NCBI GenBank assembly: GCA_010909165.1
Contig: MU008178.1
Location: forward strand, 1 to 64,000
Direction of reading: 5' to 3'
Length of the DNA: 64,000 bases
From: Anthoceros angustus
Taxonomy: Eukaryota > Plantae > Anthocerotophyta
In this document: piece by piece, positions 5,787-53,950 of the stretch
How positions within the stretch are numbered: position 1 is the stretch's first letter
Layout of the letters: every line of letters starts with the position of its first letter
Notes under the pieces: generated by a model
What the model was told of the DNA's origin: nothing
Databases searched by the model: none
Seen by the model: the letters and a program-made list of their open reading frames with translations, nothing else
Translations under genes and position numbers: made by a program

Positions 5787-6479
5787 CTTTGCTCACCCCG
5801 GCTGCGATTCTTCACACCTCAACTAGAAGACAACGCACGACTAAGAAGTTGAGCACGACTCAGAGTTCAGTACCCTGCTGAACGTTTCCTTGTGATTTCG
5901 TATGCGGATTTGAGGAAGTGGATTTTCTACTACTGGTCGCATTCCCGGCGATCGTCCTTCCGAACCCGCCCACTAGTTCCTCTGTCAAGACGGCCTCTGA
6001 GTTTTGGAGCTCAGACCAGGTAGATTGTCTGTCATGTTGATTGCAATTGGCAACGAGTACCTGGCTCGATGTGCCTGATAGTTTGTTCACTAATGTTCTG
6101 GCTGTATTCGCAGCAGGCTGCCGGTTTCCTGTCAGATTGTAAATCTTGGAGGGAATCAAAATCGGAGGCATGTAAGTCAGTCAGGCTGAAAGTGGTGTAG
6201 TTGTCCGAGGGATCTCGAGGAGGAACTTGTTAATGGCTGTGATGCGTCTTATTCATGATGTCTTGGTGCATAGCTAGTAGGTTTTGTTTTGACCGTGGGG
6301 ACCTCGTCTACAAGCTCGCCTTTTTCTTCACAGAGCCAAGATGACTCATGACAAGGCCCTTAGGTGAGTGGCGTGCCTTGGGCGCAGGTGGCGAGGTTTG
6401 TTCTACTCCCTGCCTTGCATCATTCTTGCAGTGCCCTCGATTAAGCTGGCGACTTCTCATGTACAACATTATCGGATAC

Positions 6480-17810: not shown

Positions 17811-17993
17811 TGTTACGATAGGCATCATTAGGTTAAGCCTAAACACATATGTCATGAATAAGCACGTTAGGGTTATATATGAACGGGTATGTATATAGTA
17901 CTTAAAAACATTTTTGTGTATGAGATTGTCATTATCAAATCTACTAAAGTGAGTTTGTTCTTTAGCTTCTTCTCGCTCCGCTCGATATTTTCA
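17811..17993 (+). repeat. 5' LTR (183 bp)
   Basis: TGTTACGATAGG...GATATTTTCA, followed by an iMet-type PBS. Confidence 0.96.
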
Positions 17994-18036
17994 TGGTATC
18001 AGAGCATGGTGCTCTGCTTCCTGCTGGATTTTGACA

Positions 18037-18694
18037 ATGCCGAGGCGAGGAGGCCGTAGAGGACATCAGAGTGGTGTGCCCCCAAGAAATTTCCACAAGG
18101 AGGCCCACACACGAAGACAAACAGCAGGTGTTCCGATTGATACCTTGCTGGACCTCTACGAACACGACCATCCTGCCCTCTGGCTACAACGTTTTGTGGC
18201 ACAACGAAGAACCCCACCTGGACCAACCTGGATCAGAACTCGCAACCAGGAAATTGACCGACTCTACAGGGAGCGTTGTCACAGGAGAGGACAGAATTCA
18301 AATTTGTTCTTTAATCCTACGGCAGATCAGAATCCTCATTTGCTTTTCCGCCCTAGGAACGCTGTGACTCCCTCCTGTTCCAGTCTTCTTCCTCTGCCAC
18401 AACAACGAAGAGACAACAATCTTAGAGCAGCCCCACAGCCTAGGATCAGCGCTAATGAGAGATGGCTGCCCTGGCTAAATCTTGAAAAGGTGTCGACTTT
18501 GTCACAGCAAACCAGAATCTTACGAGGCGGCTGAGCCATACTGCAACAGGCTTGCCATCTCAAATCTCAAACGGGAAATCAAGGAGGATTTGAATTACAT
18601 CACCTATTCCCTTGAAATGCTGAATCTGAGGCTTCAGGATCAGCAAATTGGATGCAAGGACTCTGTTGTTGGGCAGATGGCTTATCAATCCTGA
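18037..18694 (+). CDS. Extra sense ORF(s) between PBS and gag: 165 aa (18037-18534) plus an overlapping coiled-coil-like frame to 18694
   Basis: MPRRGGRRGHQSGVPPRNF... and ...SNLKREIKEDLNYITYSLEMLNLRLQDQQ. No recognised domain. Confidence 0.45.
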
Positions 18695-19164
18695 AATTTT
18701 CCGCTGCATTTTGAGTGGAGCAATCCTGGCGCAGGGGCAACCCCAGCCAGGATCTGAAGCGGCGGCATGGAACATACACCCCTTCACCATGCAACTTTTG
18801 TCTGCACCTGATTCGTCCAACTGTGAATGTCTATTCACAAGATAGGGACATGACGGTTAGCTTCAACCCTAATCTTTAGTTTAGTTTCTTGAAGCGACAT
18901 ATTTTTTTAGGGTTATGCCTATAAGCGCAACTGTTCACTAGTGTCTGAAAGGTAGTTGAGGAGTTCAGCACAAGAAGGGCGTATCTTTTTGGTACCCCCT
19001 CCTTTGGCTGAACCCTTCCAATTACCCTTCCTGCACTTAATGGTCAGTCTCTGCGACTAAAGCATGAAATTGAGCAAACTATGCATGGATACTTATCTGC
19101 CCTATAGGAACCATTGTTCCTTATAGTCTTTCTGTTATCCGTGTCTTCACCTGAAAGTCCAAAC

Positions 19165-22100
19165 ATGGCTGCTCCAAATTCACATCCACATATAGCCCCG
19201 GCACTATCCTTTACTTCAGAACTGAAGGAAAAGGATCGGTTTAAGGGCAGTGGTTACCTCATTTGGCGAGTCAGGATTAAGGCCATCATGTCTGCTCGAG
19301 GAGTGTGGCCAGTCCTTGATGGCACTTTCAAGCAGCCTGATCCTACCACACACCCAGATGATCACGCCAAGTGGATGCATCACAATGGGATTGCAATGGC
19401 CATCCTTATCAACGGCCTTGATGCAGATCTTGTGCCCGATGTTGAATTCCTTGACACAGCACGAGAGATATGGACTCAGCTGGAGACCACCTACCATTCC
19501 ACTAACATGCTTTCCCTGTCGGCTGTTAGAATGGAATTCTATGCTTTGAAAATGAGGGAGGGAGAGAAGATCGCTGTACATACCAGCAAGTTTCGCCATT
19601 TGAGAGCTCAGATCACGTCGCTGACTGGGAACAAAATGCCGGAAGTCGAAGCTGTATCTCAGCTGTTGATTAGTCTCCCACCCTCTTACCAAAGCTTTGT
19701 CACAGCACAGAATGGACCTGTGAAGCCTGCTTCTGCTGGCGCTGTCGCTGCTGCTGCCCCCACTGTTGAGGACATCATCGGCGCACTCTACCAGGAGGAG
19801 CAGGCCCGCACTCTCTCTGGCCATGCTCCTAAGAACAAGGCAGAGCGGGTGTTAGCTGTGAACACTCGCCCTTTCAAAGGCAAGGGCAAGTTCAGGGGGT
19901 GGAATAACACACCTGGAGGCTCTGCTGGGCAGCGAACTGATTCCACCAGCAGCTCTTCCACAAAACGACCAGGTTCTTGTAACTGGTGTGGTACCCCTGG
20001 GCATTGGGCAAGAGAATGCCGTCGTAAAAGGCAGGTGAGCCACAACGCCCGCCCAGAGCCAATGCTGCTGTCAAAGAGAAAAACTCTGGCGATATGAAAG
20101 CACCAGTCAAGATACTCACTGTCTGCCTTTCCAGTTCGCTGAATGATGACGGCAGCTGGTATTTGGACTCCGGGGCTACAACTCACATTTGTAAAGACAG
20201 GGAGTTGTTCACTTCTCTTAACCTTGGTCATGTCCATGACAAGGTGTTGCTTGGAGATGAGCAGAGTACCACCAGTCTGCGCATAGAGGGCAGAGGTACT
20301 TGTGTCTTCAGGCTGCATGACAACACAGATCTCAAGTTAGACGAAGTTCTGTATGTTCCAAGCATGGCCAAGAACCTCATGTCTATGAGTCAGTTGTTAC
20401 GTTCTCGTACCTTTTGCATGCGGGCTGATTTCAATCACTGCTCCTTCTATAGGAAGACATATCCAGATACGTGCATCTTCAAGGGCATATTGGATCATGA
20501 CCTGTATAGGTTGAACATAACCTGTAACCCTGCCATTGTCCTCCAACATGCTGCACATTCCATGACAAGTAATTCTGTTAGTGCAAAGCAGGAGTCAGTC
20601 TTATGGCACGCTAGGCTAGGACATATAAACAGGTCAAAGCTGATCGACATGTCCGTGATGGAATGTCACAGAGAGCCGTTACCTAAATGCTTTAAGGATT
20701 TACCAGTCTGTGAATCCTGCATCCTGGCCAAGCAGAAGGAATCACCTTTCCCTAATGCTCCTGCACACAGAGCCACACAGGTCTTGGAATTAGTCCATGC
20801 TGACATATCGGGCAAAATACATGAGCCATCCTTAGGAGGTTCACAATATTTCTTCACCTTGACGGATGGCTACAGCCGGTATACATGGACATTTCCTATG
20901 CGTCTGAAAAGTGATACTTTCAACTGTTTCAAGGAATGGCTCTTGACTGCTCAGAGACAATCTGGAATGCCTCTCAAGATCTTAAGGACAGACAATGGGT
21001 CGGAGTTTGTGAACTTATCTTTTGATGAACTGCTTCAAGAGAATGGTATTCTTCGACAATTAACTGTTCCCTACACACCACAACAGAACGGGGTTTCAGA
21101 GAGGAAAAACCAAACATTGTTAGGAATGACAAGGAGCATGTTGATATGGGCGAAGCTGCAGGCTCTTGAGGTGAGGCGGTTGTGACAACCTATATTACGA
21201 GCGAGTCCTTACGAGCTCATCCCACAAGACACCATACGAAACATTCTGGAACAAAAGGCCGAGTCTTCTTCATCTGCGTGTTTTTGGGTCAAAGGCATAT
21301 GCACATATTCCTGTTGAAAAACGCAAGAAGTTAGATGCTCGTGCACAAGCCCTTATCTTTGTAGGATACAGTGAACATGTAAAGGCCTACAAACTCTACA
21401 ATCCAGAAACAGATTCAATGGTGCTTGCGAGGAGTGTCGTCTTCCTAGAGCCTGTTCAGCCCAGGGACATATCATCCACCGAGTCTGTTCCCACATTCGG
21501 TGGTTCTGATATTCTAGATGCTGAAGAGATAGCAGAATATCCCCTGGATGACATGGAACTTGCTGCTGCCCCACCATTTATTCCTGCTCCTGCTGCTGCA
21601 GATGATGATTGGCAACCAGTGGAGGCTCTTGATGCGGAGCAGGGTCCTGTCCCAGGCCAGGATGATCCACCTGTGAGGCAGATGTGGCCCAGGATGATAT
21701 CCCTCATGGCGCCGGTAATCCTCCTGTCCAGGAACAACAAGCAAATATGCCTGATGAGGAACCTGCACCAGAACCCGAGTTGAGGAGATCGACTCGTCAT
21801 CGGCCACCACCTTCTGAATGGGCAGAGCCACGTTATCAGTCCGTGGATTTTAGGACAAACCTGGTGACTAATCCTGTCCTACCAGATGAGCCTACCTCCC
21901 TATCACAAGCCTACGATGGCCCTGAGGCTAAGCAATGGAAGATTGCAGTAGAGGATGAATACCAATCGTTAGTGAAAAATCGGACTTGGACTCTTACAGA
22001 TTTGCCTCCTGGCCGAAAGGCCATATCCTGCAAATGGGTTTTTAAAATAAAACTGAATGCCAAGGGTGAGGTTGCGAGGTTTAAAGCTAGGCTAGTGGCT

Positions 22101-23474
22101 CGAGGTTTTACACAAGTGGAGGGCCTGGACTACCAGGAAACCTTCTCGCCAGTGGTAAGAACGCAATCCATTAGACTACTGCTAGCTTATGCTACGGAGC
22201 ACGATCTGGATCTTCAGCAAATGGATGTTTGCACCGCTTTTCTATATGGGGCCTTAGACGAAGAACTCTATATGCTTCAGCCTGAGGGATACGAGAATAA
22301 GAAGCATCCCAACAAAGTCCTCAAGCTGCTCAAGTGTATTTACGGTTTAAAGCAGAGTGGGAGAGTCTGGTACTTTACCATGCACGTTTATCTGCTCACC
22401 ATTAACTTCGTTCAGGGCACAGCTGACTCCAATGTCTACAAGCTCACGGATGGCTCCTCTATTGTCATCCTTGCACTCTATGTTGATGATGTTATCCTTG
22501 CAACCAATGATCAGCTGCTGCTATCAGAAGTTAAACAGAAACTGAGCAGCAAATTCGATATGAAAGACATTGGCGAGTTGAAGTTCTGTCTTGGTATTCA
22601 GCTCTTGAGGGTTAGGTCTGAAGGACTCCTATACATTCATCAGCATAAGTACATCAGTGAGATCCTAAGGAAGTTTAACCTAGATCAAGCGCGTCCTGCC
22701 ACTACACCCTATTCCGTTGGAACAAGGCTTACCCGAGAGCAGTGTTCTGAAACAGCTGAGGAGATAGAGGATATGCGAGATGTCCCATACAGACATGCTG
22801 TGGGCAGTCTGATTTTTGTGGCCAATTGGACGCGGCCCGATATCCAATACTCTGTTAGTACAGTCTCGCAGTTTTTAGAACACCCTGGCAGGACACATTG
22901 GACGGCTGTTAAGAGGATTTTTCGTTACCTAAAAGGCACTCTCACAACAGGCTTGGTTTACAAGAGTAGCGGCCAAGGAAAGCTTACCTTGACAGGTTAT
23001 ACGGATGCCGACTGGGCTTCTGATTACGACTCTCGCCGCAGCCTGTCCACTTATTGTTTTCTCTTGGCCTCCGCTGCTGTGAACTGGAGCTGTAAGAAGC
23101 AAGCAAGCATCGCCCTCAGCTCCACCGAAGCCGAATATAAGTCCTTGACCGAGGCTTCTAAGGGAGCTGAGTGGGAGAGGAGTTTCCTTGCTGATATTGG
23201 TGAAGTGCAAAACCAGCCCACACAGCTGCTCTGCGACAATCAGTCCGCCCTTGCGTTAGTTGCCAACCCAAAATTCCACGCTCGCACGAAACATATCGAG
23301 ATCCAGCATCACTACATTCGGGACGTTGTGGAAAGGAAAGTGATCCAGGTTGGTTATGTTCAGACAGATGCAAACACAGCTGACATTCTGACTAAAGGCC
23401 TGTCCAAGCAGCTGCACTATGCACATATGGAAGGGTTGGGACTCTCAGATTTCTCAGCTTACTTCCAGCAGTAA
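19165..23474 (+). CDS. Copia gag-pol (gag, zinc knuckle, protease, integrase, RT, RNase H) with a few frameshifts near 20050, 21200 and 21700
   Basis: CNWCGTPGHWAREC, WYLDSGATTHIC, LWHARLGH, RTDNGSEF, PQQNGVSERKNQTL, FKARLVARGF, QMDVCTAFL, LYVDDVIL, GYTDADWA, ARTKHIEIQHHYIRD. Confidence 0.95.
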
Positions 23475-23673
23475 AGCAGTGAGGACTTATCTGGTTGTTG
23501 GGGGGGGTGGAAGCTTGCGCTTCCAGATTATTTTGAGGACCTCCTCTAACCCAGCCAGGCTCCTCCCTGCATATGAAAGCAAGGTTAGTACATGCATATG
23601 AACACAAGGCTGACCAGTGCAGGTGGATGAAGCTTAGAGCAATATTTAATCACCTGGCTGCTGGTCCTTTTTC

Positions 23674-24150
23674 TTACTCTTCCTCGCTGGGTATCACGTC
23701 TTTGACCTTCTCCAGTAGCTTGATAGTCTTTTGAAGCTCCTGGATTAGGCTTTGTTTCCCCGCTTCCCCTTTGAAGTCATCAGACAGGTGAGGTTTGGTC
23801 TGCCCTTTCTTCGCTTTGCCGACTATCATTGAGAAGTCCACCTGCACATGGCAAGGACCTAGGTGCGCGTACTGCCCCCAGCAGTATCGTGCATCCCAGT
23901 CCCACCCTCTAGTAGCAGTGGCTTTCCTCTCTGCGTCTGTAGTTGGAAGGCCTTCTGGTGAAGACGGAAGACTGTCCTTCACGGTTTCAGGGCTTGGTGC
24001 TCTCTTCTTCCTCTTGCTCTTGCGCTGGTTCGCCAGGTTGCTGTAGCTACGCCCGCTCCGTGTTTGCATGATGGCCAGTCTGAGCAGGTGGATGAGCGTG
24101 AACAGGACGAGCTGGATCAGCCCGATCACAGAAGCTAGGTGGGCTGCCAT
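23674..24150 (-). CDS. Antisense ORF (158 aa) between pol and the 3' LTR
   Basis: Open ATG-stop frame with a hydrophobic N-terminus, a basic RKSKRKKR stretch and a C-terminal heptad-like helix. Confidence 0.5.
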   Translation of the reverse strand: MAAHLASVIGLIQLVLFTLIHLLRLAIMQTRSGRSYSNLANQRKSKRKKRAPSPETVKDSLPSSPEGLPTTDAERKATATRGWDWDARYCWGQYAHLGPCHVQVDFSMIVGKAKKGQTKPHLSDDFKGEAGKQSLIQELQKTIKLLEKVKDVIPSEEE

Positions 24151-24343
24151 TTTGCGGCTGCCCCGTCTCGCTTTTATCCTCAGCTGGCCTTGGGGCGCAA
24201 GCGGTTGTGTACGCTACGCGAGTACTCGGCGGCTGGTGCTGTCCGCTACCGGGCGTGATGCCAGCGGTGGTTCAGCTCAAGTGCGTCGGGCTCTGCGTGA
24301 AGGAATCCTGGTCATTTCTATGTGTGTTGAGCTTAAGGGGGGG

Positions 24344-24526
24344 TGTTACGATAGGCATCATTAGGTTAAGCCTAAACACATATGTCATGAATAAGCACGT
24401 TAGGGTTATATATGAACGGGTATGTATATAGTACTTAAAAACATTTTTGTGTATGAGATTGTCATTATCAAATCTACTAAAGTGAGTTTGTTCTTTAGCT
24501 TCTTCTCGCTCCGCTCGATATTTTCA
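24344..24526 (+). repeat. 3' LTR (183 bp)
   Basis: Identical to the 5' LTR and preceded by the AAGGGGGGG PPT. Confidence 0.96.
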
Positions 24527-31147: not shown

Positions 31148-34100
31148 GAGCTACGCTTTTCAAGAAAAATAAATTATTTTTACTTTAGTCTGATATTTTA
31201 ATATTAAAGATAAAAGACTTGTTTAATTTAACTATTTTATTTTTATATAATAAATATAAATTAATATATATCGAGCAACTATTTTCTCAATAATATAATA
31301 TAATATGAAAATAATATATAAATTAATATAAAATATATTTGCTCAATTTTTAAATTTTTCTAAATTATTCATCGAAATGTAAAAATTTCTAGATATAATG
31401 CCAATACCAAAGTATAACCAACTAGTGCACTTGAACCACAGTAGCTCGGGATGCGAGGAATTAGGATTGGATTGAGGGCAAAAACCACACAACTCGGGAT
31501 GCTAGCGAGTGGGGTTGAATACTCACTGTTCTCAACCGAGGCCTTGCCTCTAACAACTAGACCCGAGCGAGTGAGGAATCGAGATCGAGCTCGGGATGCA
31601 ACAAAGTAGGATTAAACCAGCGACCACGTGAAGGCCTTGCCTTCAACTACCAAGACCCGGTTTCTTGATATTGGTTTAGTATGGACGTGCTTAATATATG
31701 ATCATTTATAAAGTGCTGAATTGAAGAAAATATACTACCTTCTTTGTTGAAATTATATAGAATATTTTATACCGTATTAAAAATTAATCCTTAAAAATTG
31801 ACTATTCGACAAAGGCGTCAAACCATAGCCCCACTCCCCACGATCGTGTCATTCTTTATGTTAGTGCCTCTCTTTATATGTTGTTGCATCACATTGCATC
31901 GTATTCAATACGGCACGAAATCACAAATTTGACTCGCCAGTGCAAAGTATGATATCATGAATACACAATCAAGTGAACACACCTCGCGAAGATCTTGGCT
32001 GGAGGAGTATGCGGGTTGGGTGACGTCGACGTTTTCCCAACTTGAGCGAACTTTATTTTCGATCTGTTCCCCTACTACACAAAATTGGTTGGATCGAAAC
32101 TGCTCATACAATCTTACTCTTCATCCCTGTTGAATTTGGTGTTCAGGATTCACGATCTTACGGTGGCGATCTCTCTGGCCTGGTCATTGTTTCTTTGGTA
32201 GCGGGGTTGCTTGCTCGACTTGTGGGTGGAATGATTTCGGTGGCGTCAACATGGACGAAATGCCACCGCACATTTTCCACGGTTGCTAGCGATCTTCTTC
32301 GTTCCAGCTTCTGAAAATAATGATGTTCACTCGATTCACAAAACCGGTGACTTCTCCATGCTTTAGGTGATGTTTAGTAATATGAAATGGCAAGCGGGCT
32401 GGCACGAAACAAGGATGGCACATCAACCAGCGCCTGCCAGATATCTTTGAGAGGCGTGTCCGAGAAAACACGAAGCCGGTCAGGGTAGCGCGGGCGCAGG
32501 ATGTAACTTTCGACGGCAACAAATGTCTGAGTTCGTCTCTTCGTCCCGATTTCTGCGGTGAGCACAGATCTAGCCTCGGGAAGCAAGTTTGCGGTGGTCG
32601 CACATGGAAGGATTTTGTATTCCAACCGGGCTTCATCGCATATGATCGTTTTGTGGAAGAATTGGCGAAAATTCGGTCATGTTCTTGGGGCTCTTGCTCC
32701 GCTCATCTTGTTGCATGATCTTGAGCTTTTTAGGTCTCGACCTCACGATGCTTCAAGGCCTTGAAATGGCTCGGCTGCACTGGGCAACCCCATACCACCA
32801 CCTTCCCTAGCACCGACGCTCAAGGGCTTCCCCAACCACTAGGAATGCCACCTTTCTGCGTTTTGAAATTAGTCTCACTGAAGGAGATGTCATCGGATCG
32901 GTTGATGAGCAAATTGTTTACTTGGAATCGCTTGCAGAGGAGATGCTTGAGAACTGCCTGCCCTCGCCCTAGCGCAAACATTTCCACCACGGATTAGATT
33001 TTTTTTTACACATGCCGGAGCAGGACTAGTCAGACAAATGCCACCCCGTCAGGGAGCTACGCTTTTCAAAAAATAAATTATTTTTACTTTAGTCTGATAT
33101 TTTAATATTAAAGATAAAAGACTTGTTTAATTTAACTATTTTATTTTTATATAATAAATATAAATTAATATATATCGAGCAACTATTTTCTCAATAATAT
33201 AATATAATATGAAAATAATATATAAATTAATATAAAATATATTTGCTCAATTTTTAAATTTTCTAAATTATTCATCGAAATGTAAAAAATTTCTAGATAT
33301 AATGCCAATACCAAAGTAAGGCAACTAACCAGTGCACTTGAACCACAGCGCTCGGGGATGCGAGGAATTAGGATTGGATTGAGGGCAAAAACCACACAAC
33401 TCAGGATGCTAGCGAGGAGTGGGGTTGAATACTCAATTGCCTCAACCGAGGCCTTGCCTCTAACAACTAGACCAGGCGAGTGAGGAATCGAGATCGAGCT
33501 CGGGGATGCAACAAAGTAGGATTAAACCCGCGACCACGTGAACCAAGGCCTTGCCTTCAACTACCAAGACCAGTTTCTTGATATTGGTTTAGTATGGACG
33601 TGCTTAATATATGACTGTTTATAAAGTGCTGAATTGAAGAAAAATATACTACCTTGCTGTTGAAATTATATAGAATATTTTATACCGTATTAAAAATTAA
33701 TCCTTAAAAAAAATTGACTATTCGACAAAGGGGCGTCCAAACCATAGCCCCACTCCCCCTACGATCGTGTCATTCTTTATGTTAGTGCCTCTCTTTATAT
33801 GTTGTTGCATCCTGTTGCATCGTATTCAATACGGCACGAAATCACAAATTTGACTCCGCTTGTGCAAAGTATGATATCATGAATACACAATCAAGTGAAC
33901 ACACCTCGCGAAGATCTTGGCTGGAGGAGTATGCGGGTTGGGTGGGACGTCGACGTTTTCCCAACTTGAGCGAACTTTATTTTCGATCTGTTCCCCCTAC
34001 TACACAAAATTGGTTGGATCGACGCGAACTGTTCATACAATCTTACTCTTCATCCTGTTTGAATTTGGTGTTCGTAGGATTCACGATCTTCTGGTGGCGA

Positions 34101-35042
34101 TCTCTGCGTCATTGTTTCTTTGGTAGCTGGCGGGGCGAAGTTGCTTGCTCGATTCTGCTGGTGGCTGGTGAATGATTTCGGTGACGTCAACATGGACCAG
34201 GAAATGCCCACCGCACATTTTTCCACCGGTTGCTAGACAGCGATCTTCTTCCAGTTTCCAGCTTCCAGTTGCCTGAAATAATGATGTTCACTCGGTTACC
34301 GAAACCAGGCAGCTTCTCCCATGCTTTAGGTGATGTTTAGTAATATGAAATGGTAAGCGGGCTGGCACGAAACAAGGATGGCACATCAACGGCGCTTGCG
34401 GATATCTTTGAGAGGCGTGTCCAGAAAACCTGGCCCGGTCGAGTGGCGCGGATGTAACTTTCGACGGCAACAAATGTCTGAGTTCGTCTCTTCGTCCCGA
34501 TTTCTGCGGTGAGCACAGATCTAGCCTCGGGAAGCAAGTTTGCGGTGAGCACAGATCTAGCCTCGGGAAGCAAGTTTGCGGTGGTGCTGTACACCATGGA
34601 GAAGGATTTTGTATTCCAACCCCGGGCTTCACTGCATATGATCGTTTTTGTGGAAGAATTGGCGAGAAAATTCCCGGTCATGTTCTCTTGGGGCTCTTGC
34701 TCCTGCTCATCTTGTTTGCATGATCTTGAGCTGCTTTTTAGGTCTCAGCCTCTGATGCTTCAAGGCCTTGAAATGGCTCCAAGCCACAGAATTGGGCACT
34801 GCCATACCACCACCTTCCCTAGCACTGACGCGCTCAAGGGCTTCCGGCCCCAACCCTGCTAGGAATGCCCTGCTCTGCGTTTGCTGAAATTGGTCTCACC
34901 TGAAGGAGATGTCATCAGATCGGTTGATGAACGAAATTGTTTACTTGGAATCTGGCTTCGGTACAGGGAACAGATGCTTGAGAACTGTTCCTGTCCTCTG
35001 CCCTAGCTGCAAACATTTCCACCACGGATTAGATTTTTTTTT
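31148..35042. repeat. Tandem duplication of a ~1.9-kb unit (31148-33008 and 33054-35042)
   Basis: Both begin GAGCTACGCTTTTCAA...AAATTATTTTTACTTTAG and end CCACCACGGATTAGATTTTTT. Copy 2 has an internal ~36-bp duplication near 34505-34580. Confidence 0.9.
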
Positions 35043-37240: not shown

Positions 37241-38343
37241 TAAGGGCGTCGGTCTCGTTCGAGAATTGTTTCGACCTTGGTGTGATGGACAACGAGCCAA
37301 TAATTTGCCAGTTACGCACGGTGAGGCGCCTCTAGTGCAAACAATTTCAGCTTTTCATGCGGACACAAATGAGTGCGAGCACAGCGAAGACCTTGTGAGC
37401 AAACATGTGAACAAGCCTTTGTCAATTGTTGTGCCTCTTGTCGTTTGTTGTTCTCTGTCTATGGTTGTAACTATTGTGCTGGTTTCACTTCCAACAAAGA
37501 GTCTTGCTGCGATATGTCCCGTAGTTTCTCTTGCAGCAATTATAGTGTTCAAGCTTTTGTAGCAGTCAAAGACACGAGTCAGCGTAAATTACATAGTGCT
37601 ATACATTGGTTCTCAATTGATGTCTTATATGTCCATGTACCACAAATAGGCTTGCATTCCCTACCACATATTATGGAACAATGGTGTCCACTCGTCTAGC
37701 AAGCTCCATGAAAGTGGGCTGTTTCTTCTTAGATGGCAGCTTCCAAGTACTACTTCTTTCCCAAAAAGCAAGCACTTTTCAAGCTATTATCGGTGCTATG
37801 TCACGTACTGTAGTCTTGTTGGAAGTGTGATGGCGGCCTCGTGGGCCTCGAGGCGCCCGCTGATTTATTTTGAGGCCGGTAGATTCTAGAGAATTAACCA
37901 AATATAATTATTTTTTGCTCAATAGAGTAAAATTTATTACAATAGGATAGAAAATATGCCATGTGAGGTGAAAATGATTCACCATCCATGTTAAAACCAG
38001 GGCCGTAAGGTAAAGTATTGGGCCATGTAGATCTAAAGAAGCTCATTCTAGAAATCCCACCAACATCGCTAATCGGGAAGTAAAACATTTCCTATTAAAT
38101 AATATTCATGCGGATCCAGGATATACAAAAAACCAACAAAGAAACTTTTCTTTACAGAGTTTCCTGTATATCCAGAATGGCATGAAATACAAATTAAAAT
38201 AATGAAGAGTAAATACCAGAATAGATTGATCCCCATTACTGGATTGATTGATCAACCTACATAAAAAGCGTAACTTAGGCATAAAACTAAAAGCACAACA
38301 AAATCCAATAATAATCCACAGATACTTAATGAACATACTTACC

Positions 38344-41300
38344 TTATTTTGGAAAATTGACTTTACAATTATACAAATTGAAAATATAACTTTCACGACC
38401 ACTAGGTTTCATTGGCACAACTTGTCCAACACTGTCATAGTTTTGAAGGAGTTGATGAAGCTGGGGGCTTCGAAAAAATTGTTCTTCCTGTAAGGTGACA
38501 ACCTGATAAAAAAAACATTAGTTTTCACTCAGCTGAATATGATAAAAGGCAGGCAAGATAACTTACTGATTCCGGAAGATTTTCGACAGTGGTAGTGGAC
38601 ACCCCTTCAGATGCAGTATCAATTTTCTGTTTCTGTTGTCTTTCCCATTGCAATCTTCGAATCTCTTGCTGCTCTTTCTGCTGCAGTTTCAGTTTTTCTT
38701 GATGTTTCAGGTGTTCTTGACTTCTTTCTACATTCTTCCGCCTCTGAATCTCGAGAGCTTTAGCTCTTTGCTTGGACACTCGTAGTTCAACAGCTTTGCG
38801 CCTTTGCCTTTCAATAAGTGCCTCTATGTCTTTTTGCCGTTGCAACTCCCTTTCCTGTTTTTGCCTATCATACTCTGATTCCCGTTCTCGCGAGATATGA
38901 GCAAGATGCTGCTCAAAATTGCTTGTATTGCCATTGCCAATCCCATTTTGCAATACCACATCCAGAGGTAATATGGCCACATTTCTGTCCTGTTGCACTT
39001 CAGACATCTCATCACAATCACTTGGCACAATGGCCTGCAACTGAGGAACCACTGAATTATCAATGTTGAAATGTGGAATAGTAAGGCTTCCCATACTGGT
39101 GGCTGAAATTGCATCTTTAGTAGATGGGTTTGAAATCTGCCAAAAGCAAAGAGTCAGACTAACTCCAAAAGAAATATAAGGACAAAATTATGCAATAACT
39201 TAACCTTGACATCATTTTGAACTTGAATTAAAGCCTCTGTCGTTGGTCTGATCTTAGTGATCTGTAGATCATGGACACTACTTTCAAACAGAGTATCTGA
39301 ATCCATTGCTTCACTATCTTTTACCTAGCAATACAGCACAAAATAGAGTTAAAAGACATCACCAAAAAGCACCAAACGCAAAAAACAATGACAGTAATAA
39401 CCTAATTTTAAGGGCAGCAAATGCCACTTCGAGAATAATCTGGTGTACTGTTGACATTGTAATGCAGTGTATTCTCATAACGGATAACAGGAGTAGCAAC
39501 AGACAACACAACCTGACAATACAAAGAGTCAGAAAACACTACAGTATAACGGTTCTGAAAATAGACAACAAATTCCTCACTTACATTCTCAACAGGTGGC
39601 GCTTGTAGAGGAAATTGACTGCACGCCTGTGAAAGCTGACAATATTATAACATTTTCAAGCAATATGATTTACCTCATGCAAAAAAAAAAAAACTTACAT
39701 CTTCAGGCTGACTCGCAAAAACGACTTCCGGAGTCACATCGAAACTAGTTGATGGAAGCACGCCCCGCAGGTCGTCTTGCATCCGATTCAGTTCTTCATT
39801 CAATAACTCTTTGTACGATCTTCGTTCACCTGGAACTAGCACCTTTGCTGCTGCTGCTTGTTTTGCTTGCCCTGAACGGTCATATCTGCAAACCAACAAA
39901 TTGTAAGAAGGATTAACAAATCACATCAACAGCAAAAGCAGCCACTACAAATTACCTTGAGAATCCAGCATCCGTTTTGTGTCCAGTAATACTTCTTCTG
40001 GCATCACAAGGCACCTGGGCCATTGTAAGGCGTGTAATCATTGTAACGCGACAACTTTTGTTCGTGTAATAGCCATCGAGACCAGCCCCTTCTGTCATCG
40101 TCTTCATATACCTTGACAACATTCCTTTGGACACGCGAAGTTTCGCATACCACGCCTGGTTTAACAATATCTTATTAGTATGATATAGAGAGAAATACAC
40201 AGAAAACAGAAGATTTTAAACTTACATTTGATCTGGGATTGTCGATTGGGGAATTGAATAGACCCTACTAGAAAAGGGCAGTCATGTTACACTTTATGTT
40301 AAGATTTGGACCCCCCTTTGTTGCAATTATGTTAAAATCTTGGGGTCTTGTTACACTTTTGGGACCCCCTTATTACGATTAGGTTTGGAAACCAACCCTC
40401 CACCTTATTCTGAGTCATATAGTCTTGTTGCAATTATGTTGCAATGTAGTGAGAGGTGGTTTGTGTCCCTCTCAAAATTTCAACATAATTGCAACAACCA
40501 AAGTGTTACATCGTCTCTTATTGATTTTGCGCTTGGTACCGAACCTCCTCCCCATCTACCTTCCTCTTTTACTACTATTACCCTATGGAATACCTAGTTT
40601 TACTTAGTAGTTCCACCGATACTCGTATGAATACACATATATAAAATACATGTATGAATACATTCTTTGTAAAATACACGTATTGTTCATGGTAACATAT
40701 ACTATATGGTAATTTCACTGTGATATATGGTCATATTCTATTTTATATAAAATAAGCATATCGTCACACGGATAACGTACATACTTTGTACACGTCCACG
40801 ATCGTTTACTAGTTTGTCCTTGAGCACTCGATTGCCTTTTGTGCCTCTGAGTTTGTGCTACAGCGGACCCATGTTTGCTATCTTGCGTGGGGTTGTTTGG
40901 CTCAAGTCCTCCCTCCTTCTCTCTCCCCTAGACAAGCGCCTCATGTCAATTCTGCGCCTTTTTGCCCTTGCCTCGACCATGGCTGTTGGTTGCTCCACTC
41001 CTATCCTCCCTCTCCCTCCTTCTTCCATCGCCTTCCCTAACTTCACATCATAGTCTGGTTACGCATCAGCTGAAAATTTGAGATAAGAAATAACAGCATG
41101 GAATGGGTCTTGGCCTGACCTTGCAACTACTTGCAGTTGTACATGTACACGAGACACCCTGCCATGCTACTATCGCCTTCTCTAACATCAAATCGCACTA
41201 GCTAGTTACGCAACAGCTGAAAATTTGAGAGGAAATCACAGTATTGGAACAGGTCTTGGCCTGACCTTGCAATGCTCTGTACAAGATACGCGGTGTACGT

Positions 41301-44300
41301 GATCCCGCCACCATCCCTTCACCAACATCATGTCACGGTGGTTACGCATCAAGCGAAAAATTGAGAGGAAATCATAGCATGGAATGGGTCTCTCTGGAAA
41401 TCACGGCATGGATTGGGTCTCTACTTGAAATCACGGCATGGAACGGGCCTCCTCCTCTTCCTTTCCCTCTCCCCTCCTCCTTCTTCCATCTCCCCTCCTT
41501 CCTCCCTCCTTCCTCCCTCCTTCCTCCCTCCTTCCTCCCTCCTTCCTCCCTCCTTCCTCCCTCCTTCCTCCCTCCTTCCTCCCTCCTCCTCCCTCCTTCC
41601 TCCTCCTTCTTCCTCCTCCCTCCTTCCTCCCTCCTTCCTCCCTCCTTCTCCTCCTCCTCCTCCCTACCTCGGATCCCTCTCCCCTTTTCCTCCTTGCCTC
41701 TCCTCCTCCTCCTCTCTCGGATCCCTCTCCCCTTTTCCTCCTCCTCTCCTCCTCCTCCTCCTCTATATGGATCCCTCTCCCCATTTCCTCCTTGCCTCTC
41801 CTCCTCCTCCTCCTCCTCCTCCTCCTCCTCCTCCTCCTCCTCCTCTCCCTCCTCCTCCTCCTCCTCCTCCTCCTCTCCTCCTCCTCCTCTCCTCCTCCTC
41901 CTCCTCCTCTCTCCTCCCCTTTTCCTCCTTGCCTCTCCTCCTCCTCCTCCTCCTCCTCCTCTCCTCCCTCCTCTCCCCCTCCTTCCTCTCCTCCTCCTCC
42001 TCTACCTCTCCCTCTCCTTTCCTCCTTGCCTCTCCTCCTCCTCCTCTCCTCCTCTCCCCTCCTCCTCTCCTCCTCCTCCTCTCCTCTCCTCTCCTCCTCC
42101 TCCTCCTCCTCTCCTCCTCCTCCTCCTCCTCCTCCTCCTCTACCTCGATCCCTCTCCCCTTTTCCTCCTTGACTCTCCTGCCTCCTCCTCCTCCTCCTTA
42201 TCTACCTCTCGTCCCCTTTTCCTTGCCTATCGCCTTCTCTAACATCAAATGACACTAGCTAATTCATAGCATGAAAAATTTGAGAGGAAATCAGTATTGG
42301 AAGTACAAGATCTGCGGGTGTACGTGATCGCCCACCACCATCCGTCACCTCGTCATGTCACCTGCTGTTACGCATCGGTGAAAAATTGAGACTAGAAATC
42401 ACGACTTGGAGCGGGTCTTTACTTGAAATCCATGGACATGGAGCGGGCCTCTTCTTTCCCTCTCCTCCTCCTCCTTTCCATCTACCCTCCTCTTCCCTCT
42501 CCCCTCCTCTTCCTTCCCTCTCCCCTCCTCTTGCTCCTCTTCTTTTCCATCTTCCCTCCTCCTCCTTATAATCTCCCCTCCCATCCTTCGCTTTCCCTCC
42601 TCCTCCTTCCTCTCTCCCTCCTCTCCTCCTCCTCCTCCTCCTCCTCCTCTACCTCGGATCCTCTCTCCCCTCCTTCCTCCTTCCTCCTCTCCTCCTCCTC
42701 CTCCTCCTCCTCCTCCTCCTCCTCCTCCTCCTCCTCCTCCTCCTCCTCCTCCTCCTCCTCCTCCTCCTCCTCCTCCTCCTCCTCTATATGGATCCCTCTC
42801 CCCATTTCCTCCTTGCCTCCTCCTCCTCCTCCTCCTCCTCCTCCTCCTCATCCCTCTCCTCCTCCTCCTCTCCTCCTCCTCCTCTCCTCCTCCTCCTCCT
42901 CCTCCTCCTCCTCCTCCTCTACCTCATCCCTCTCCCCTTTTCCTCCTTGCCTCTACCTCCTCCTCCTCCCTACCTCGGATCCCTCTCCCCTTTTCCTCCT
43001 CTCTACCTCCTCCTCCCTACCTCGGATCCCTCTCCCCTTTTCCTCCTTGCCTCTCTACCTCCTCTACCTCGATCCCTCTCCCCTTTTCCTCCTTGACTCT
43101 CCTGCCTCCTCCTCCTCCTCCTTATCTACCTCGATCCCCGTCCCCTTTTCCTCCTTGCCTCTTCTAACATCAAATGACACTAGCTAATTACGCAACTGAA
43201 AATTTGAGAGGAAATCACGATTGGAAGTACAAGATCCGGCGGGTGTACACGTGATCGCCCGCCACCATCCGTCACCTACGTCATGTCACGGTTACGCGCA
43301 CGAAAATTGAGACTAGAAATCACGACTTGGAGCGGGTCTTTACTTGAAATCACGCATGGAACGGGCCTCTTCTTTCCCTCTCCTCCTCCTTTCCATCTAC
43401 CCTCCTCTTCTTTCCCTCTCCCCTCCTCTTCCTTCCCTCTCCCCTCCTCTTGCTCCTCTTCTTTTCCATCTTCCCTCCTCCTCCTTATAATCTCCCCTCC
43501 TCTCCTCTCCCCTCCTCCTCCTTCCTCTCTCCCTCCTCTCCTCCTCCTCCTCCTCCTCCTCCTCTACCTCGATCCCTCTCCCTCCTCCCTCCTTCCTCCT
43601 CTCCTCCTCCTCCTCCTCCTCCTCCTCCTCCTCCTCCTCCTCCTCCTCCTCCTCCTCCTCCTCCTCCTCCTCCTCTCCTCCTCTACCTCTCCTCTCCCTA
43701 TTTCCTCCTTGCCTCTCCCTCCTCCTCCTCTCCTCCTCTTCCTCCCCACCTCTCCCTTCTCCTCTCCCCTCCTTCTCCTTGCCTCGCAGAGTGAGCCTCG
43801 GACCCTGAACTTAGACATAGGTAAATAATATTATGTTTAGGTCACCTTTAAAGGTGAGTTAATGGGCATGTTCTTGTGATATTGTGTCAGGCACCATTAA
43901 CAAATAGTTGTGAAGAGAGTGCAAAGAAGGCGCTAGGAAAAACCTTAACTAATTGTACTCCCAATGGGGTGTAATAAAGATGGGGGAAGAGAAGAGAGAG
44001 AGGGTCCTTATTCTGATCATGTTGCAATTGCATGAGGAATTCATAAACAATGCATATGAGAGAGGATGTAGTTAAGAGGGTGAAGTGGTAGAGAGAGAGA
44101 GTGTGTTAAGATTGTAGGCCCACTTGGGGAAAGAAATGACAAACTTAATACCAAGCCTCCAAATGATGTTGCAAGTTAGAAGTGTAACATAAAATTGCAA
44201 CAACGACTGTAACATAGGCTGCCCTTTCTAGTTTCTAGAAACCCTTGGATAGCTTTGTTTTGGTCGCTTTCAGTTCACTTTGGCGAGTGATCGATCATAA

Positions 44301-45905
44301 CTCTGAAGGTTTGGATCACATCAAACTCATAGTTCTTAACCTTTGGGCGAAAGTGCTCACTTTGGTAGTTGCGCATGTCAACCTTATAATTTTTGGACAT
44401 TCGTTTCTGATACCTGCAAAGAGGAACTAATCAACAACGCATACCAAAAAGCAAAAAGCGGAAACCTACTAAAAAAAGAGGAAGAGACCTACTGAACAAA
44501 ATTTCCGCCAGAATATGATGCAAATGAAAAGTCCTTGATAAGAAGATTGTGCAACTCCTCTCCACCACGTACACCAAACCGATTCGTACAAAAGTATGCA
44601 CACCTGCTCCAGTAAACAACTAAAACTAAGATACATGATGTTTCTTTGTATTAAAACAAAAAAAATAGAACACACCTCTTTTGAGCGCCACGTCCAAAGG
44701 AATACTGGTGGTCCCTATGAGCTAAAATCCTCCGCTCATCATCATTAGAGATAAGCTTCACCTCCTTCCGACACGATACAATTCCAAGGTCCTTACTGAT
44801 CTTCATTGAAGCAACCAGGGCAGCCTGTGGCCCATGAAATATACCATGGAATATATTGATTATTGGGACATCAGAGCCACGACGGCTTTGATCCAACACA
44901 CATTTCCTCATCAGGATTCGATTAAACCCTCGAAAGAAGGACATTAACCTGCACAACGAGAAGAAAAGCTTTCAACCAAATGGCAACCAAGCAAGAAAAA
45001 CAACCAAAAACACAAGGGGGAGAGCTTTACGTTTCTGGAGAAAACCTGCTGTTGTCTTTCAAATTACGCACTTGGTGAAAGAAGAGTATTAAAATGAGGT
45101 TCAGGTCCCTATGGGGAATGTCCTCTACCGCTCTGTCCCATCCCCTTACACCGCTAACTTTCATGAACGCTTTCAAACGACTGCGACACCAATTGTTTTG
45201 ACGTTTCGACTTATCCTCACCACCACTCAGTGCATTATCAACAGCACCATCAGGAACAGAAGGGTCAAACCCCTGCTCTCTGAATATAGCTTCATCCTCA
45301 ATCTCTTCTACCCCCATGGCAAAGTCATCTTCAGGACCAGCACATCTTAATCTTTCAAACATATCGAGGCACTCTTGATCCGGTACCACTTCAGGGTTAG
45401 GGACAACCACAAGCATCGAGAACTCACCAAGCTAACATGGAGGGCCTGCCCCACAGACACTTCCAGTCTGCAGACATGCCTTCGCAGCATTGAGGACCAT
45501 GCTATCGTCAGTGATCAAATGATCATTGTCACTTACAAAGACAACACCCCTCTCAGTTACAGGGACATAGTTAATGATCTCAGACAAAGGGCCTTCCACC
45601 AAAGGAACAGCTCGAGTGTCCACACTTCTTCTCTTCTGGGCAAACTCAGCTGCGTGCCGAGCAGCCATCTTAGAAGGAAAACGCCTTGGCGGCTTTGGAC
45701 AAGTCTTCAATGGCACCAAATATGTCCTCTCACTATGGACAAGAACACCATCGACTTTACCATCATCATTGAGGGGATGAGTTGCAGTATATGCAATTGC
45801 AGACTTGACACGTTGTTGTGTGAATGGCTTTGACATGACTTCGGAGATAGGAACTTGTTTTTTCCCCGGTCCAGCAGGTCCAGTAGGTTTCCTTTTTGGA
45901 GCCAT
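38344..45905 (-). CDS. Crypton/DUF3504-type tyrosine recombinase, multi-exon, interrupted by a ~4-kb insertion. Exons: 45905-45461, 45388-45031, 44948-44676, 44603-44493, 44413-~44242 plus ~40265-40226, 40155-39956, 39885-39699, 39626-39585, two uncertain exons, 39136-38567, 38502-38344
   Basis: Spliced motifs: SKRQNNWC..L..F...IPHRDLNLILILFFHQVR...FSPE|TLMSFFRGFNR; FGVRGGEELHNL; RMSKNYK; LFNSPIDNPRSN|AWYAKL; YTNKSCRVTMITRL; ITGHKTDAGFSR|YDR; C-terminal YIFNLYNCKV. Intron phases are consistent through the catalytic core. Confidence 0.85.
40267..44241. mobile_element. Non-autonomous CACTA-like TIR element inserted into YR exon 5
   Basis: TIRs ACTAGAAAAGGGCAGTCATGTTAC (40267-40290) and GTAACATAGGCTGCCCTTTCTAGT (44209-44232), with subterminal TTGCAACA/GTAACA repeats. 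Flanking CCC(T) on both sides. Removal rejoins ...LSK|GLFNSPIDNP. Confidence 0.7.
41160..43790. repeat. Higher-order repeat: three units, each a ~200-bp header plus a long (CCT)n/CT polypyrimidine tract
   Basis: Header ...CTAACATCAAAT...GAAAATTTGAGAGGAAATCA...CTTGAAATC recurs near 41180, 42235 and 43160, each followed by CCT-rich tracts. Confidence 0.9.
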
Positions 45906-50077: not shown

Positions 50078-51815
50078 ATGCGTTTGGAAAGTGACAGCCC
50101 AGACGCAATGGTGGACATCAAAGAAGGTAAAAGTCAATTTTTATTTCTTTCTTTAACTTTACTTGATATTCACTTCCTTTTATCTGATATCAATGTTCCG
50201 CAGAGAGCGACTACAGGAGTGTCCACCAAGACAACATGGAAAGTGCACCACCAAACAAACAAATTCCCAACCATGGGGATCCAGGATATGGCACCAAGCC
50301 GGAGATGGAGCTTCCACTCCTAGAAATACGAAAAATCGTCGAGAAAGGTAAAAATAGCTTGTTTGATTTACCCTTTTGTATTAGGCTAATAATAATTATT
50401 TCTTGCAGTCGTTTCAGAACATGCTATGTTTTTATCCATGAACAAACAAGACTTGCAGCTCCTTCGCGTGATGCCAGATGAACTCTACAAAATTAAGAAG
50501 GTAAAATCTCATGACTGAAATATTAACATTTTAGTTCCATATAAAGATTTCTGATAAAGATTTTCAATCTTCATGAGATAAAAAAGAATTTTCGCACAAC
50601 AGTTCAGTTAGAGTTGGAGACTCTGACACTTGTCAACAGATTCAACGGGCATCAACTTTCTGTTGAATCCCTCTTGGAGGTATTTTTAAACCAATTCTTT
50701 AAGCATATTTCAATAAATAGGGAGAACTTATACAGGTCTGTAACAGATTGCTGCAGAACAGGCAGCTGCGGCAAAGGAAATCAAGGATAAAATAGATATC
50801 ATTGACAGTAAAGTCGACAATGTTAATTTCTATCAGGTGAGGCAAATACCGCTCTTAATTCACTTTAAGGTTTACATACTTGACCTAACTCAATTCTCAC
50901 TTTTTGTAGACTCAAAAAGGCAAGCGGAAAATTGATGAGCTTGATGCTCCGGCACCACAATATGGCCCTGACCAAGAATTTTCTCAATTTGGCAAATGGA
51001 TGGAAAAATACCAATATCCTGAAATATTCCAATATTTCAAAAAAAGGTATGTTCCTATTTGGGAACGTAATATTCAAGATCTGGAAGAGCCAATCCTCAA
51101 GGAAGACGGCTCAACTCTAACACTTCAGGAACATAGGGAGATTCAGATGAGTGAGTTATTTTAATCTTTCAAATGACCTCTTCCATGTTTTGCTACAGGT
51201 AAAATGCAATATATTTCCTGTTTAATCGTGTATTCTATGATATACAGAAATTGCACTTGTACTAGAAAACAAAGAGCTCAAAACAAAAGATTTGCTGGCT
51301 CTCATGGAGGATCCAGAGACAACAAAAAACATTAAAAAGGTAAATCATGACAATTTCACTTTCTTTAAACAAGATGTAATTTCTGATGTAAATCTATGTG
51401 CTATCCAGAACTTGCGATCACACTTCCGTAGTGTTGGAAATCTCCACAGCACCTGCTTAACATTGGTCAAAAAGGTATACACAAAGCAGGATCAACTGCG
51501 ACTTGAAATGGAGGTTAGTGACTAACACGTTTGCACCTTCGTTTATAGTTTTCGGAGAGCCAAAAGGAGTTATTCGCACTCTTTGAGGTTAGTGCATGAA
51601 ATGAAAGTGAATTTGAAATCATGTTAAATTCTAATTTAAGACATGTTTCGTTGCAGAAATACTCTCGTATGGATGAAATTCTGGAAATGATAATTTTTCT
51701 TTCTGAGCCATATAACTATCAAAGAAAAAATTATAATTCTGAAGAGGAAGCTGCACCAAATAACACTCCGAAATCACCTGTTTACACGCCATCCACGCCC
51801 GTGGAAGATAATTAG
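50078..51815 (+). CDS. Intact ~10-exon gene of unknown function (about 360 aa, helical/coiled-coil), divergent from the YR; start codon uncertain
   Basis: GT-AG exons join in frame: MRLESDSPDAMVDIKE|ESDYRSVHQD...LLEIRKIVEK|VVSEHAMF...YKIKK|IKKNFRTT...SLLE|IAAEQAAAAKEIKDKID...|TQKGKRKID...GKWMEKYQYPEIFQYFKKRYVPIWE...|...|NLRSHF...|FSESQKELFALFE|KYSRMDE...PVEDN*. Confidence 0.75.
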
Positions 51816-52149: not shown

Positions 52150-53950
52150 CATGCCCTCTGGTTGTCGATCATTTCTTTGGAATAAGCCCTTTGCGTCTTT
52201 GCTCAAGAAAAGGCCACTTTTCAAAGCAGTGTCAACTACTGGCATAAAGCTCCCAAACTTGGAGACATCTCCAATCTACCTACTGTGCACACGGTTGCTT
52301 GCTCAAGAACGGGAATACCAATCTCACCTTGGCTACTTGTCCCCAAGCCACTGTCATGAGGGAGGAAATTCTCCCACATGGAAGTGTCCTCTTGATCTTG
52401 GCGAGGTGTTGGAACTCGGTTTGAGCAACAGCTGCAACCTCGGAATACCTAACAACCAGCTTTTGAGTGGGGACTACCTTGTCCATGAGCAGCATAACCT
52501 TTGGTGTTTGCACATGAAACCTCGTCCCTTGCTTACATGTACAATAACCCCAAGGGGTTCCGGCACCACTCAATATATCTCGTGCTTTCCATTGTCTATT
52601 GACATAAGCAATATTTGGAAGTCAGGTTGGTAAGACCACATGGGTCTAATATGGGTTGCTTTTGGATAGCTGCACAATGTCCTCTTGCTTGGAATTTGAG
52701 CATGCCTACTGCATACCAAAAGTGCCAGTAACCTCTTGAACAAAATATGCAGCAGCCAATCAATCGCTGATTATGAAGGGTTTTCTTGGAGAGCAAACAT
52801 CTGTACTTCATATATTTGTGATATGCTTCTATGGACGAGTTGCAGTCTTGTCCGGCATGTGGAATTGTCTGCAACTTTAATCCATTTATGTTAGAACCCC
52901 TTTGGTCTTTAAAATACTTCACAAAGCGCTAGCGGACTCGGAAGGTAGCATAAAAGCAGTTCAAGTCTTTGGCGCATGCTTGGTTTACCTCTACCCGACA
53001 TCAATGTCCATATGCATGATGTCACCCAGGATTTCATAATTGCATGCCTGGTGTCGGGTGCCTTCACCTTTTTTAGCAATTGCAGCCAAGCCCTCCGAAC
53101 ATGCCATAGACACAAGAAAACCAGTACGTTACTTCCAAACACAGCCTTGATGCCATTAATTTCCGCCATACAATCGTCTACCGAGCGGTCGGTTGCCAAT
53201 CGCCTATGTAGCATCCTTGCTCGTAAGCATTCCAATAACTGTGAAATATTGGCGTAGCCTTGCTGGTAATCAGCCGAGGATACCGTTAAAATGATCGTCA
53301 AAAACCAACGGTGAATAGTGGAACTTCCACTTATTGGTGCCAAATGTGGCATCCATAGATATCACTGACTTGTGACTCCAACGCAACATGGACTGTGAAA
53401 ATCTGTTTGGATGCCTAACATAAAATCCTTGGCATGCTGTTCTTCTCCCGGCAAAGGAAAAAACACCTCCTCCCTATGGACATCCATCCACAACTTGACA
53501 CTCACCTCATCGTTTACATGGAATCGCCACACCCAGGTCCAACTTTCTTTTCTCCTTATGTCTCTAGGCAAGCAAAAATCATCCGCTCAGGGCGCTTGCA
53601 CATCACGATGCTTCCTTAAAAACACCTAGACTCATGGTCAATTAGGATCAGCGATCGTCTTCGTAGCAACTTATACTTCACCCACTCCTTCTTAGGCGTG
53701 TGGGCGTAAGGAGCAAGGTAATTTGAAGGCTGAATCACTCGCTAGCAAACCATGACAATACTCTCCCGTTGAATCAATGTGCTCCTTTGATGTAGTCTCG
53801 ATTCGGCAACCTCGGGAAACATCTCCGGTATGTTACAAACAACAAAAGCACCGCGTTTCTTGCTTTCTCCAGCAATCTTGGGCGCTGCTCCCTTTGCCTA
53901 ACCCTTGCTTAGTGATGTCACGCTACTGAGAATCCGAGGAGTTTGCTTTC
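52150..53950 (-). pseudogene. Mutator (MULE) transposase with SWIM finger, frameshifted
   Basis: FMLGIQT, SMDATFGTNKWKF..LVFDDH, DDCMAEINGIKAVF...FLCLWHVRRAW, HAGQDCNSSIEAYH and the SWIM-like YCTCKQG. Confidence 0.85.

Follow-up and report, generated by a model that had tools for sequence, protein, structure and literature searches.

The DNA considered here is a stretch of 64,000 nucleotides from Anthoceros angustus (Anthocerotophyta), namely positions 1 to 64,000 of contig MU008178.1 in assembly GCA_010909165.1, and this whole stretch is termed the window in the following. On its minus strand, from 45905 to 38344, lies the remnant of a 12-exon recombinase gene, which reads as about 950 codons if an X is set at each break (Table 1). 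The exon pieces are collinear, have canonical GT-AG borders and encode a tyrosine recombinase with two domains, and the gene is matched collinearly by fern, liverwort and transcript-like homologs in tblastn and tblastx alignments. A sequence-only reading of this DNA had proposed such a GT-AG exon chain, and the chain as such is borne out. The same is true for the motifs that it had listed: FGVRGG lies in exon 3, MSKNYK in exon 4, TNKSCR and TGHK in exon 6, FSR/YDRS spans the junction of exons 6 and 7 (the slash marks the splice border), PETL is found across exons 1 and 2, and FNLYNC is found in exon 12. The motifs align column for column with homologous proteins.

The encoded protein starts with a region that is confined to this lineage. 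About 215 codons of exon 1 are of this kind, the first 215 residues having no relative among the family, and it is from residue 228 or so that the sequence aligns with homologs; the 3' part of exon 1 represents the start of the N-terminal domain, which is of the core-binding, QRICH1-like type. The very small exon 5 (GLFNSPIDNPRSN) is backed by tblastn and tblastx matches to the proteins P0068, P0041 and P0015 and to the transcript-like contigs L001 and L002. Exons 8 to 10 (39626-39205) are parted by introns of 72-77 nt, and no homolog support was found in that stretch. Exon 11 belongs to no significant Pfam family, and the motif of exon 12 aligns with NMSNCVVNVY of the fern proteins as well as with GTFHNCSFN of DUF3504-type proteins. 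Ten of the eleven introns are short (64-82 nt) and AT-rich, with a GC content of 0.26-0.43 as compared to 0.35-0.50 in the exons. Within the remaining one, intron 4, there is a CT-rich array (41000-43830) with units of about 920-1,060 nt and a strong skew of C over G and of T over A, and this array constitutes nearly all of the extra length of the recombinase gene.

Table 1. Parts of the recombinase gene remnant, its lesions and its second copy in the window (coordinates in reading direction of the gene, except for the second copy; slash, splice border).
Feature	Coordinates	Strand	Remarks
Exon 1	45905-45031	-	ATG at 45905, basic start resembling a nuclear localization signal; ends ..RFSPE-T
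In-frame TAG	45434-45432	-	in the non-conserved part of exon 1
Exon 2	44948-44676	-	remainder of the N-terminal domain (LMSFFRGFNRIL...GRGAQK-R)
Exon 3	44603-44493	-	Arg I and Glu I (FGVRGGEEL)
Exon 4	44413-44243	-	catalytic Lys (RMSKNYKVD); holds the in-frame TGA
In-frame TGA	44277-44275	-	within conserved coding sequence of exon 4
Intron 4	44242-40265	-	3,978 nt, filled by CT-rich satellite
Micro-exon 5	40264-40226	-	13 codons, GLFNSPIDNPRSN; needs phase-0 entry
Exon 6	40155-39956	-	box II YTNKSCRVT (Lys for His), Arg II, His III (ITGHKT)
Exon 7	39885-39699	-	catalytic Tyr (FS-R/YDRSGQAK)
Exon 8	39626-39585	-	phase 0
Exon 9 (tentative)	39512-39402	-	phase 0; followed by a 77-nt intron
Exon 10	39324-39205	-	phase 0
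Exon 11	39136-38567	-	190 codons, lineage-specific, charged, coiled-coil-like
Exon 12	38502-38344	-	conserved C-terminal motif (SYIFNLYNCKVNF), then TAA stop
3' non-coding tail	38343-38037	-	candidate element terminus
Second copy (last exon and 3' tail)	454-838	-	diverged and truncated, 74% identity overall, 37 kb away

This gene is no longer intact. The same reading frame matches fern proteins on both sides of the TGA in exon 4 (..MIDHSPK(stop)TESDQN.. in the window, ..LMLHMPPIVEGDKN.. in the fern), and the segments aligned at this point are DHSPK(stop)TESDQN and HMPPIVEGDKN, respectively. Both donors that are available to exon 4, the GT at 44279 and the GT at 44243, are in phase 2, whereas micro-exon 5 requires phase 0, and the junction of exons 4 and 5 is therefore off by one base. 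If the tentative exon 9 is real, it ends with two further stops, TAA (39410-39408) and TAG (39404-39402). The recombinase core that the sequence-only reading had described as continuous is thus broken, by the TGA as well as by the phase break, and splicing out 40267-44241, as it had proposed, still does not open the frame. The TAG in exon 1 had been explained away by an intron at 45460-45389; while the length of 72 nt fits the range of the short introns, the GC content of 0.56 is that of an exon and the donor (GGAA/GTGTCT) is weak. This segment is probably exon sequence, and a rescue of the TAG by splicing is unlikely. At least two stops and one frame break mark the locus as a decayed copy rather than an intact gene, and the recombinase cannot be made by the window copy. 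No public sequencing run contained the locus, and no usable RNA evidence was obtained; runs that were located via the neighbouring aldehyde dehydrogenase gene gave contigs of 95-98% identity from relatives or paralogues, and no reads on either stretch.

The window copy retains Arg I, Glu I, the beta-hairpin Lys, Arg II, His III and Tyr, and the full-length plant relatives that were aligned likewise have Arg I, Lys, Arg II, His III and Tyr. The catalytic residue set of tyrosine recombinases is incomplete at one position: the window copy and all plant members examined have a Lys (TNKSCR) instead of the His of box II, whereas DUF3504-type relatives have His.

The sequence-only reading had assigned the gene to the Crypton/DUF3504-type tyrosine recombinases, and this assignment holds by homology and predicted fold, not by Pfam membership. 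In hhalign, a profile built from the plant sequences only matched a DUF3504/QRICH1/KIAA1958-like profile with 99.95% probability (E 6e-38) over 348 columns that include both domains, the target profile consisting of proteins with DUF3504, QRICH1 domain and Phage_integrase, i.e. KIAA1958-like proteins of the CryptonA type. The nearest Atlas clusters carry DUF3504, Phage_integrase and QRICH1 (score 0.98, 195 shared features), and DUF3504 proteins predominate in the results obtained with the AlphaFold cluster library and the Atlas. As the family sequence profile gave no match to PDB sequences, a fold search was needed. The window protein is too broken to fold, and the fold was therefore tested on residues 175-560 of the homolog P0101 (36% identity to the window protein). 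The AlphaFold2 model of this region (predicted local distance difference test, 85; predicted template modelling score, 0.72) has its best PDB match in Cre/Tre (E 6.6e-8, template modelling scores 0.52/0.60, about 360 columns), with QRICH1 also among the matches. Among the Swiss-Prot models, the best match is human KIAA1958 (E 1.2e-10), an XerD homologue takes the third rank, and other Xer proteins and ZMYM2 follow at lower ranks. The structure prediction that had been suggested as a check thus points to a Cre-like two-domain fold.

Which organisms have such proteins? A HMMER search with exon 6 among 1.84 billion representative proteins (E <= 0.001) returned only 90 matches, none of them above about 46% identity, except for one repetitive protein that aligned in 14 short stretches. 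Full-length matches that are collinear with exons 1-7 are annotated as ‘hypothetical proteins’ and come from two Adiantum species. Further members are more Adiantum proteins, a single protein of the moss Ceratodon purpureus that carries the automatic label DUF3504-containing, and five proteins on four contigs of the liverwort Calypogeia fissa, and the two transcript-like contigs L001 and L002 have a continuous reading frame. With X set at its breaks, the window protein shows 33-37% identity to the members from Adiantum, Ceratodon and Calypogeia and to L001/L002, in alignments of about 370 residues (E 1e-53 to 1e-66). In a maximum-likelihood tree, from which fragments and unnamed matches were left out and which was rooted at the midpoint only, the plant sequences form one clade on a long stem (Shimodaira-Hasegawa-like approximate likelihood ratio test, 100), in which the window copy takes its own deep branch next to the moss, fern and liverwort groups.

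This recombinase family is multi-copy and transposon-like. In Adiantum capillus-veneris, the contigs that encode its proteins have seven different lengths; four of these proteins are about 86% identical to one another, and gene prediction has merged some members with PPR or fucosyltransferase models. A family protein of A. nelumboides carries a fused retrotransposon gag domain. A copy of Calypogeia fissa (L003:9974-12091, GCA_965154635.1) is intronless over the core, where the gene of the window has six introns, and this copy is also decayed, with an internal stop and a change of RGG to WGG. Yet another member (L004:3867-10384, ENA ERZ25073694) is halved by a 5.3-kb insertion with HTH_Tnp_Tc5 and DDE_1 open reading frames (ORFs), which is a transposon of the pogo/Tc5 type. 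With multiple loci in Adiantum and Calypogeia and a second, partial copy in the window itself, the family constitutes a dispersed repeat.

The second copy in the window gives a hint as to where the element may end. On its upstream side it is cut at 838-843, where a duplicated segment with an aldehyde dehydrogenase gene starts. On the other side, the likeness of the two copies stops sharply at 38037 and 454, respectively, and it is the block directly at this point that is most similar: identity amounts to 88% in the terminal block (38037-38229) and to 79% in the coding part, as compared to 59% in the stretch between them. From the sequence comparison, the position 38037/454 looks like an element end that is under constraint. 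The 3' tail also contains an imperfect inverted repeat (GGATATACA...AAAGAAA / TTTCTTT...TGTATATCC) at 38100-38175 and 532-580, which both copies of the 3' block have retained at a distance of some 70-140 nt from the presumed end, and this repeat could be a binding site of the recombinase or a terminator.

We consider it likely that the locus is a decayed copy of the gene of a land-plant Crypton-like DNA transposon. In its intact form, the gene would have encoded a Cre-like recombinase whose N-terminal domain is of the core-binding (QRICH1-like) type and whose C-terminal domain is catalytic. The clade to which it belongs is known to date from ferns, one moss, one liverwort and the present species. 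If the analogy to Cryptons holds, intact members would excise their element as a circle, and this circle would re-insert by site-specific recombination via a 3'-phosphotyrosine intermediate, without generating target-site duplications. The window copy itself, provided that its ends are intact, could at most be mobilised in trans by other copies.

Several points weigh against this interpretation. The profile search that had been proposed as a test does not reach the Pfam thresholds: neither a piece of the window nor any homolog attains the gathering score of DUF3504 or of Phage_integrase. For DUF3504 (PF12012, gathering score 29.7), there is no match for any piece of the window, and the best family scores are those of P0101 (24.0 bits, E 4e-5) and the moss protein P0105 (18.7). 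For Phage_integrase (PF00589, gathering score 27.1), the exon-6 piece of the window scores 15.8 bits (E 0.012), which is the one weak match of this family that Pfam searches with single exon pieces gave at all, and homologs score 17-20. Moreover, neither a target site nor an empty site nor a terminal repeat turned up, and mobility is putative; only one element end could be deduced, and this from a single partial second copy. Individual lesions may stem from assembly errors. Finally, judged by analogy to Cre, the clade with Lys for His may be no working recombinase. The position corresponds to His289 of Cre, where Lys is one of only five substitutions that abolish recombination, and the H289K variant is inactive (PMC2943603). 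The KxxR spacing recurs in poxvirus topoisomerase IB, whose Lys points away from the scissile phosphate (PMC2943603). An argument that KxxR as such indicates activity was therefore dropped: the topoisomerase IB Lys is not the counterpart of His II, and H289K kills Cre (PMC2943603).

What alternatives exist for a decayed Crypton-like transposon gene of simple composition? The recombinase could be one part of a composite element of about 10-14 kb that also includes either the divergent multi-exon ORFs around 50.5-51.8 kb or cargo of the DDE transposase type. Open exon-like pieces are indeed present at 50545-51812 on the plus strand, divergent from the recombinase gene, and no 5' boundary of the element was found. 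However, these partner pieces have neither a Pfam family nor an Atlas relative, and the upstream 6.3 kb in which they lie have no tblastx match near the recombinase in L003, L004 or the transcript-like contigs. A search for a terminal motif common to the 3' end and the upstream region (45.9-52.3 kb) found none, and within the window no part of the recombinase unit other than its 3' end is repeated. A composite element thus appears unlikely.

It is very unlikely that the locus is a functional, domesticated host gene comparable to the animal ZMYM, QRICH1 and KIAA1958 genes, with its apparent defects being either spliced out or errors of the assembly. The exon-intron structure would agree with such a role, as it is well kept with canonical sites and uniformly short introns, and so would the long lineage-specific N-terminus, the coiled-coil tail and the existence of the intact, expressed-looking relatives L001 and L002. 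In terms of predicted structure, domesticated DUF3504 genes (KIAA1958, ZMYM2/3/4, QRICH1, KCTD1, WOC) are close to the homolog P0101, KIAA1958 being the best reviewed structural match and ZMYM2 being listed among the matches. But the TGA interrupts conserved coding sequence and homology continues on either side of it, the exon 4/5 junction is out of phase, and a second, diverged copy is present in the same window. Domesticated DUF3504 genes are conserved single-copy genes that have lost the Tyr and Arg II (PMC3212892), whereas the plant family keeps Tyr and Arg II, in the window copy as elsewhere, is multi-copy and decays like a transposon, with decayed copies in several plants.

An origin from a tyrosine-recombinase retrotransposon of the DIRS/Ngaro type is highly improbable. 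Such elements also encode Cre-like recombinases, and DIRS elements occur in green algae (PMC9033089). However, no reverse transcriptase or RNase H adjoins the gene: the nearest reverse transcriptase domains of the window are at 21.7-23.5 kb and 28.6-29.7 kb, at least 9 kb off, and the first of them is part of a Copia element with its own long terminal repeats (LTRs); among the called genes within 10 kb of the liverwort copy, none has a reverse transcriptase family. The lack of an adjoining reverse transcriptase together with the introns argues against a DIRS-type retroelement, as 11 spliceosomal introns are hard to reconcile with a replication through RNA, and both domains match the DUF3504/KIAA1958-like profile. 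That the segment is fungal or animal DNA contaminating a plant contig is scarcely credible, even though DUF3504-type recombinases abound in molluscs, cnidarians and arbuscular-mycorrhizal fungi (PMC13465315), since it shares one contig with other repeats and genes, its nearest relatives are encoded on chromosome-scale fern, moss and liverwort assemblies, and it groups with these plant proteins and not with animal-type sequences, which supports the plant as host.

The other repeats and genes of the window are of several kinds. The aldehyde dehydrogenase ORFs (Pfam Aldedh) belong to a tandem segmental duplication (843-3125 and 3731-6006, 97.5% identity), whose boundary at 843 truncates the second recombinase copy and to which transcript contigs from public runs of two organisms are only 95-98% identical. 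The above-mentioned Copia element (17809-24526) has LTRs of 185 bp that are 100% identical (17809-17993 and 24342-24526), and its gag, protease-integrase and reverse transcriptase ORFs are open; it appears to have inserted very recently. At 31148-33007 and 33054-35042, a unit of about 1.9 kb occurs twice in tandem, with 87% identity between the copies. On the minus strand at 52599-53473, there are ORFs with a DATFGTNK motif, which we presume to be reminiscent of Mutator-like (MULE-type) transposases; Pfam gave no supporting match for the largest piece.

If the locus is compared with systems that are already known, the CryptonA/KIAA1958-like proteins of molluscs and cnidarians and the ‘Glomhopper’ CryptonA elements of Glomeromycota come closest in architecture, as in them, too, a Cre-like catalytic domain comes after an N-terminal domain of the QRICH1 type, in a gene that encodes only the recombinase and no reverse transcriptase. 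The CryptonA/KIAA1958-like proteins further share the P..TL motif of the N-terminal part, the ..NC.. motif of the C-terminal part, and Arg I, Lys, Arg II, His III and Tyr. Intron-containing and intronless forms both occur among the Glomhoppers (PMC13465315). In contrast to the CryptonA/KIAA1958-like proteins, the plant family forms a separate long-branch clade with 20-25% identity to them and scores below the Pfam thresholds, its members have Lys for the box-II His, and the hosts are land plants; the window copy in addition has long lineage-specific extensions at both termini and 11 introns. Cre, XerC/D and other prokaryotic recombinases have the two-domain fold and the positions of the active-site residues in common with the plant proteins, but identity is only about 13-16%, and the plant gene is eukaryotic, contains introns and encodes Lys at the position of Cre His289. 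The DIRS/Ngaro/PAT elements and the Chlamydomonas Cryptons, which we compare by their descriptions, likewise are eukaryotic mobile elements that use a Cre-like recombinase; unlike DIRS/Ngaro/PAT, the plant gene has introns and no reverse transcriptase.

The sequence-only reading had also suggested that this may be an undescribed lineage of land plants, and this is true only in part. Cryptons are on record for fungi, oomycetes, a diatom and animals, and their domesticated DUF3504 derivatives have lost Tyr and Arg II (Kojima and Jurka, PMC3212892); DUF3504 proteins are widespread in opisthokonts according to the 2026 Glomhopper paper (PMC13465315). A land-plant transposon review of 2022 does not mention Cryptons and reports DIRS only in green algae (PMC9033089). 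DIRS/Ngaro/PAT elements and Chlamydomonas Cryptons were the only such elements that we found reported for the green lineage. In the literature covered, which excludes Repbase and subscription journals, we found no Crypton described from any fern, moss, liverwort or lycophyte; all that came up were automatic labels of this name in tables of repeats. On the other hand, members of the family are already present without a name in public plant proteomes, and the moss entry has been labelled automatically as ‘DUF3504 domain-containing’. The land-plant Crypton-like family can thus provisionally be regarded as undescribed. New in the present analysis are the full exon model with its micro-exon, the list of lesions, the moss member and the tree, as well as the Lys-for-His exchange, the contrast of intronless and intron-rich copies and the conserved block at the 3' terminus.

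Is the lineage still active? We find it conceivable, if rather doubtful, that seedless land plants carry an old and possibly still active Crypton-type lineage whose recombinase works with Lys in place of the box-II His, and in which the gene is intron-rich in the branch of this plant and intronless over the core in the liverwort copy. The intact frames of the transcript-like contigs are compatible with activity of the lineage, and so is the retention of the five other catalytic residues in ferns, moss, liverwort and this plant. The conservation of these residues argues for function, and the inactivity of Cre H289K argues for caution.

The locus itself is a fossil, and its value lies in being one more documented member of the family, with a full exon model in this genome; the interest rests on the family with its unusual active site rather than on the locus. 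If the interpretation is correct, a dispersed, clade-forming family would add a class of transposons to the repertoire of land plants, and it would explain ‘hypothetical proteins’ and chimeric gene models in the annotations of fern and bryophyte genomes. The family would then also represent a natural test of how a tyrosine recombinase can work, or cease to work, with Lys at the His-II position.

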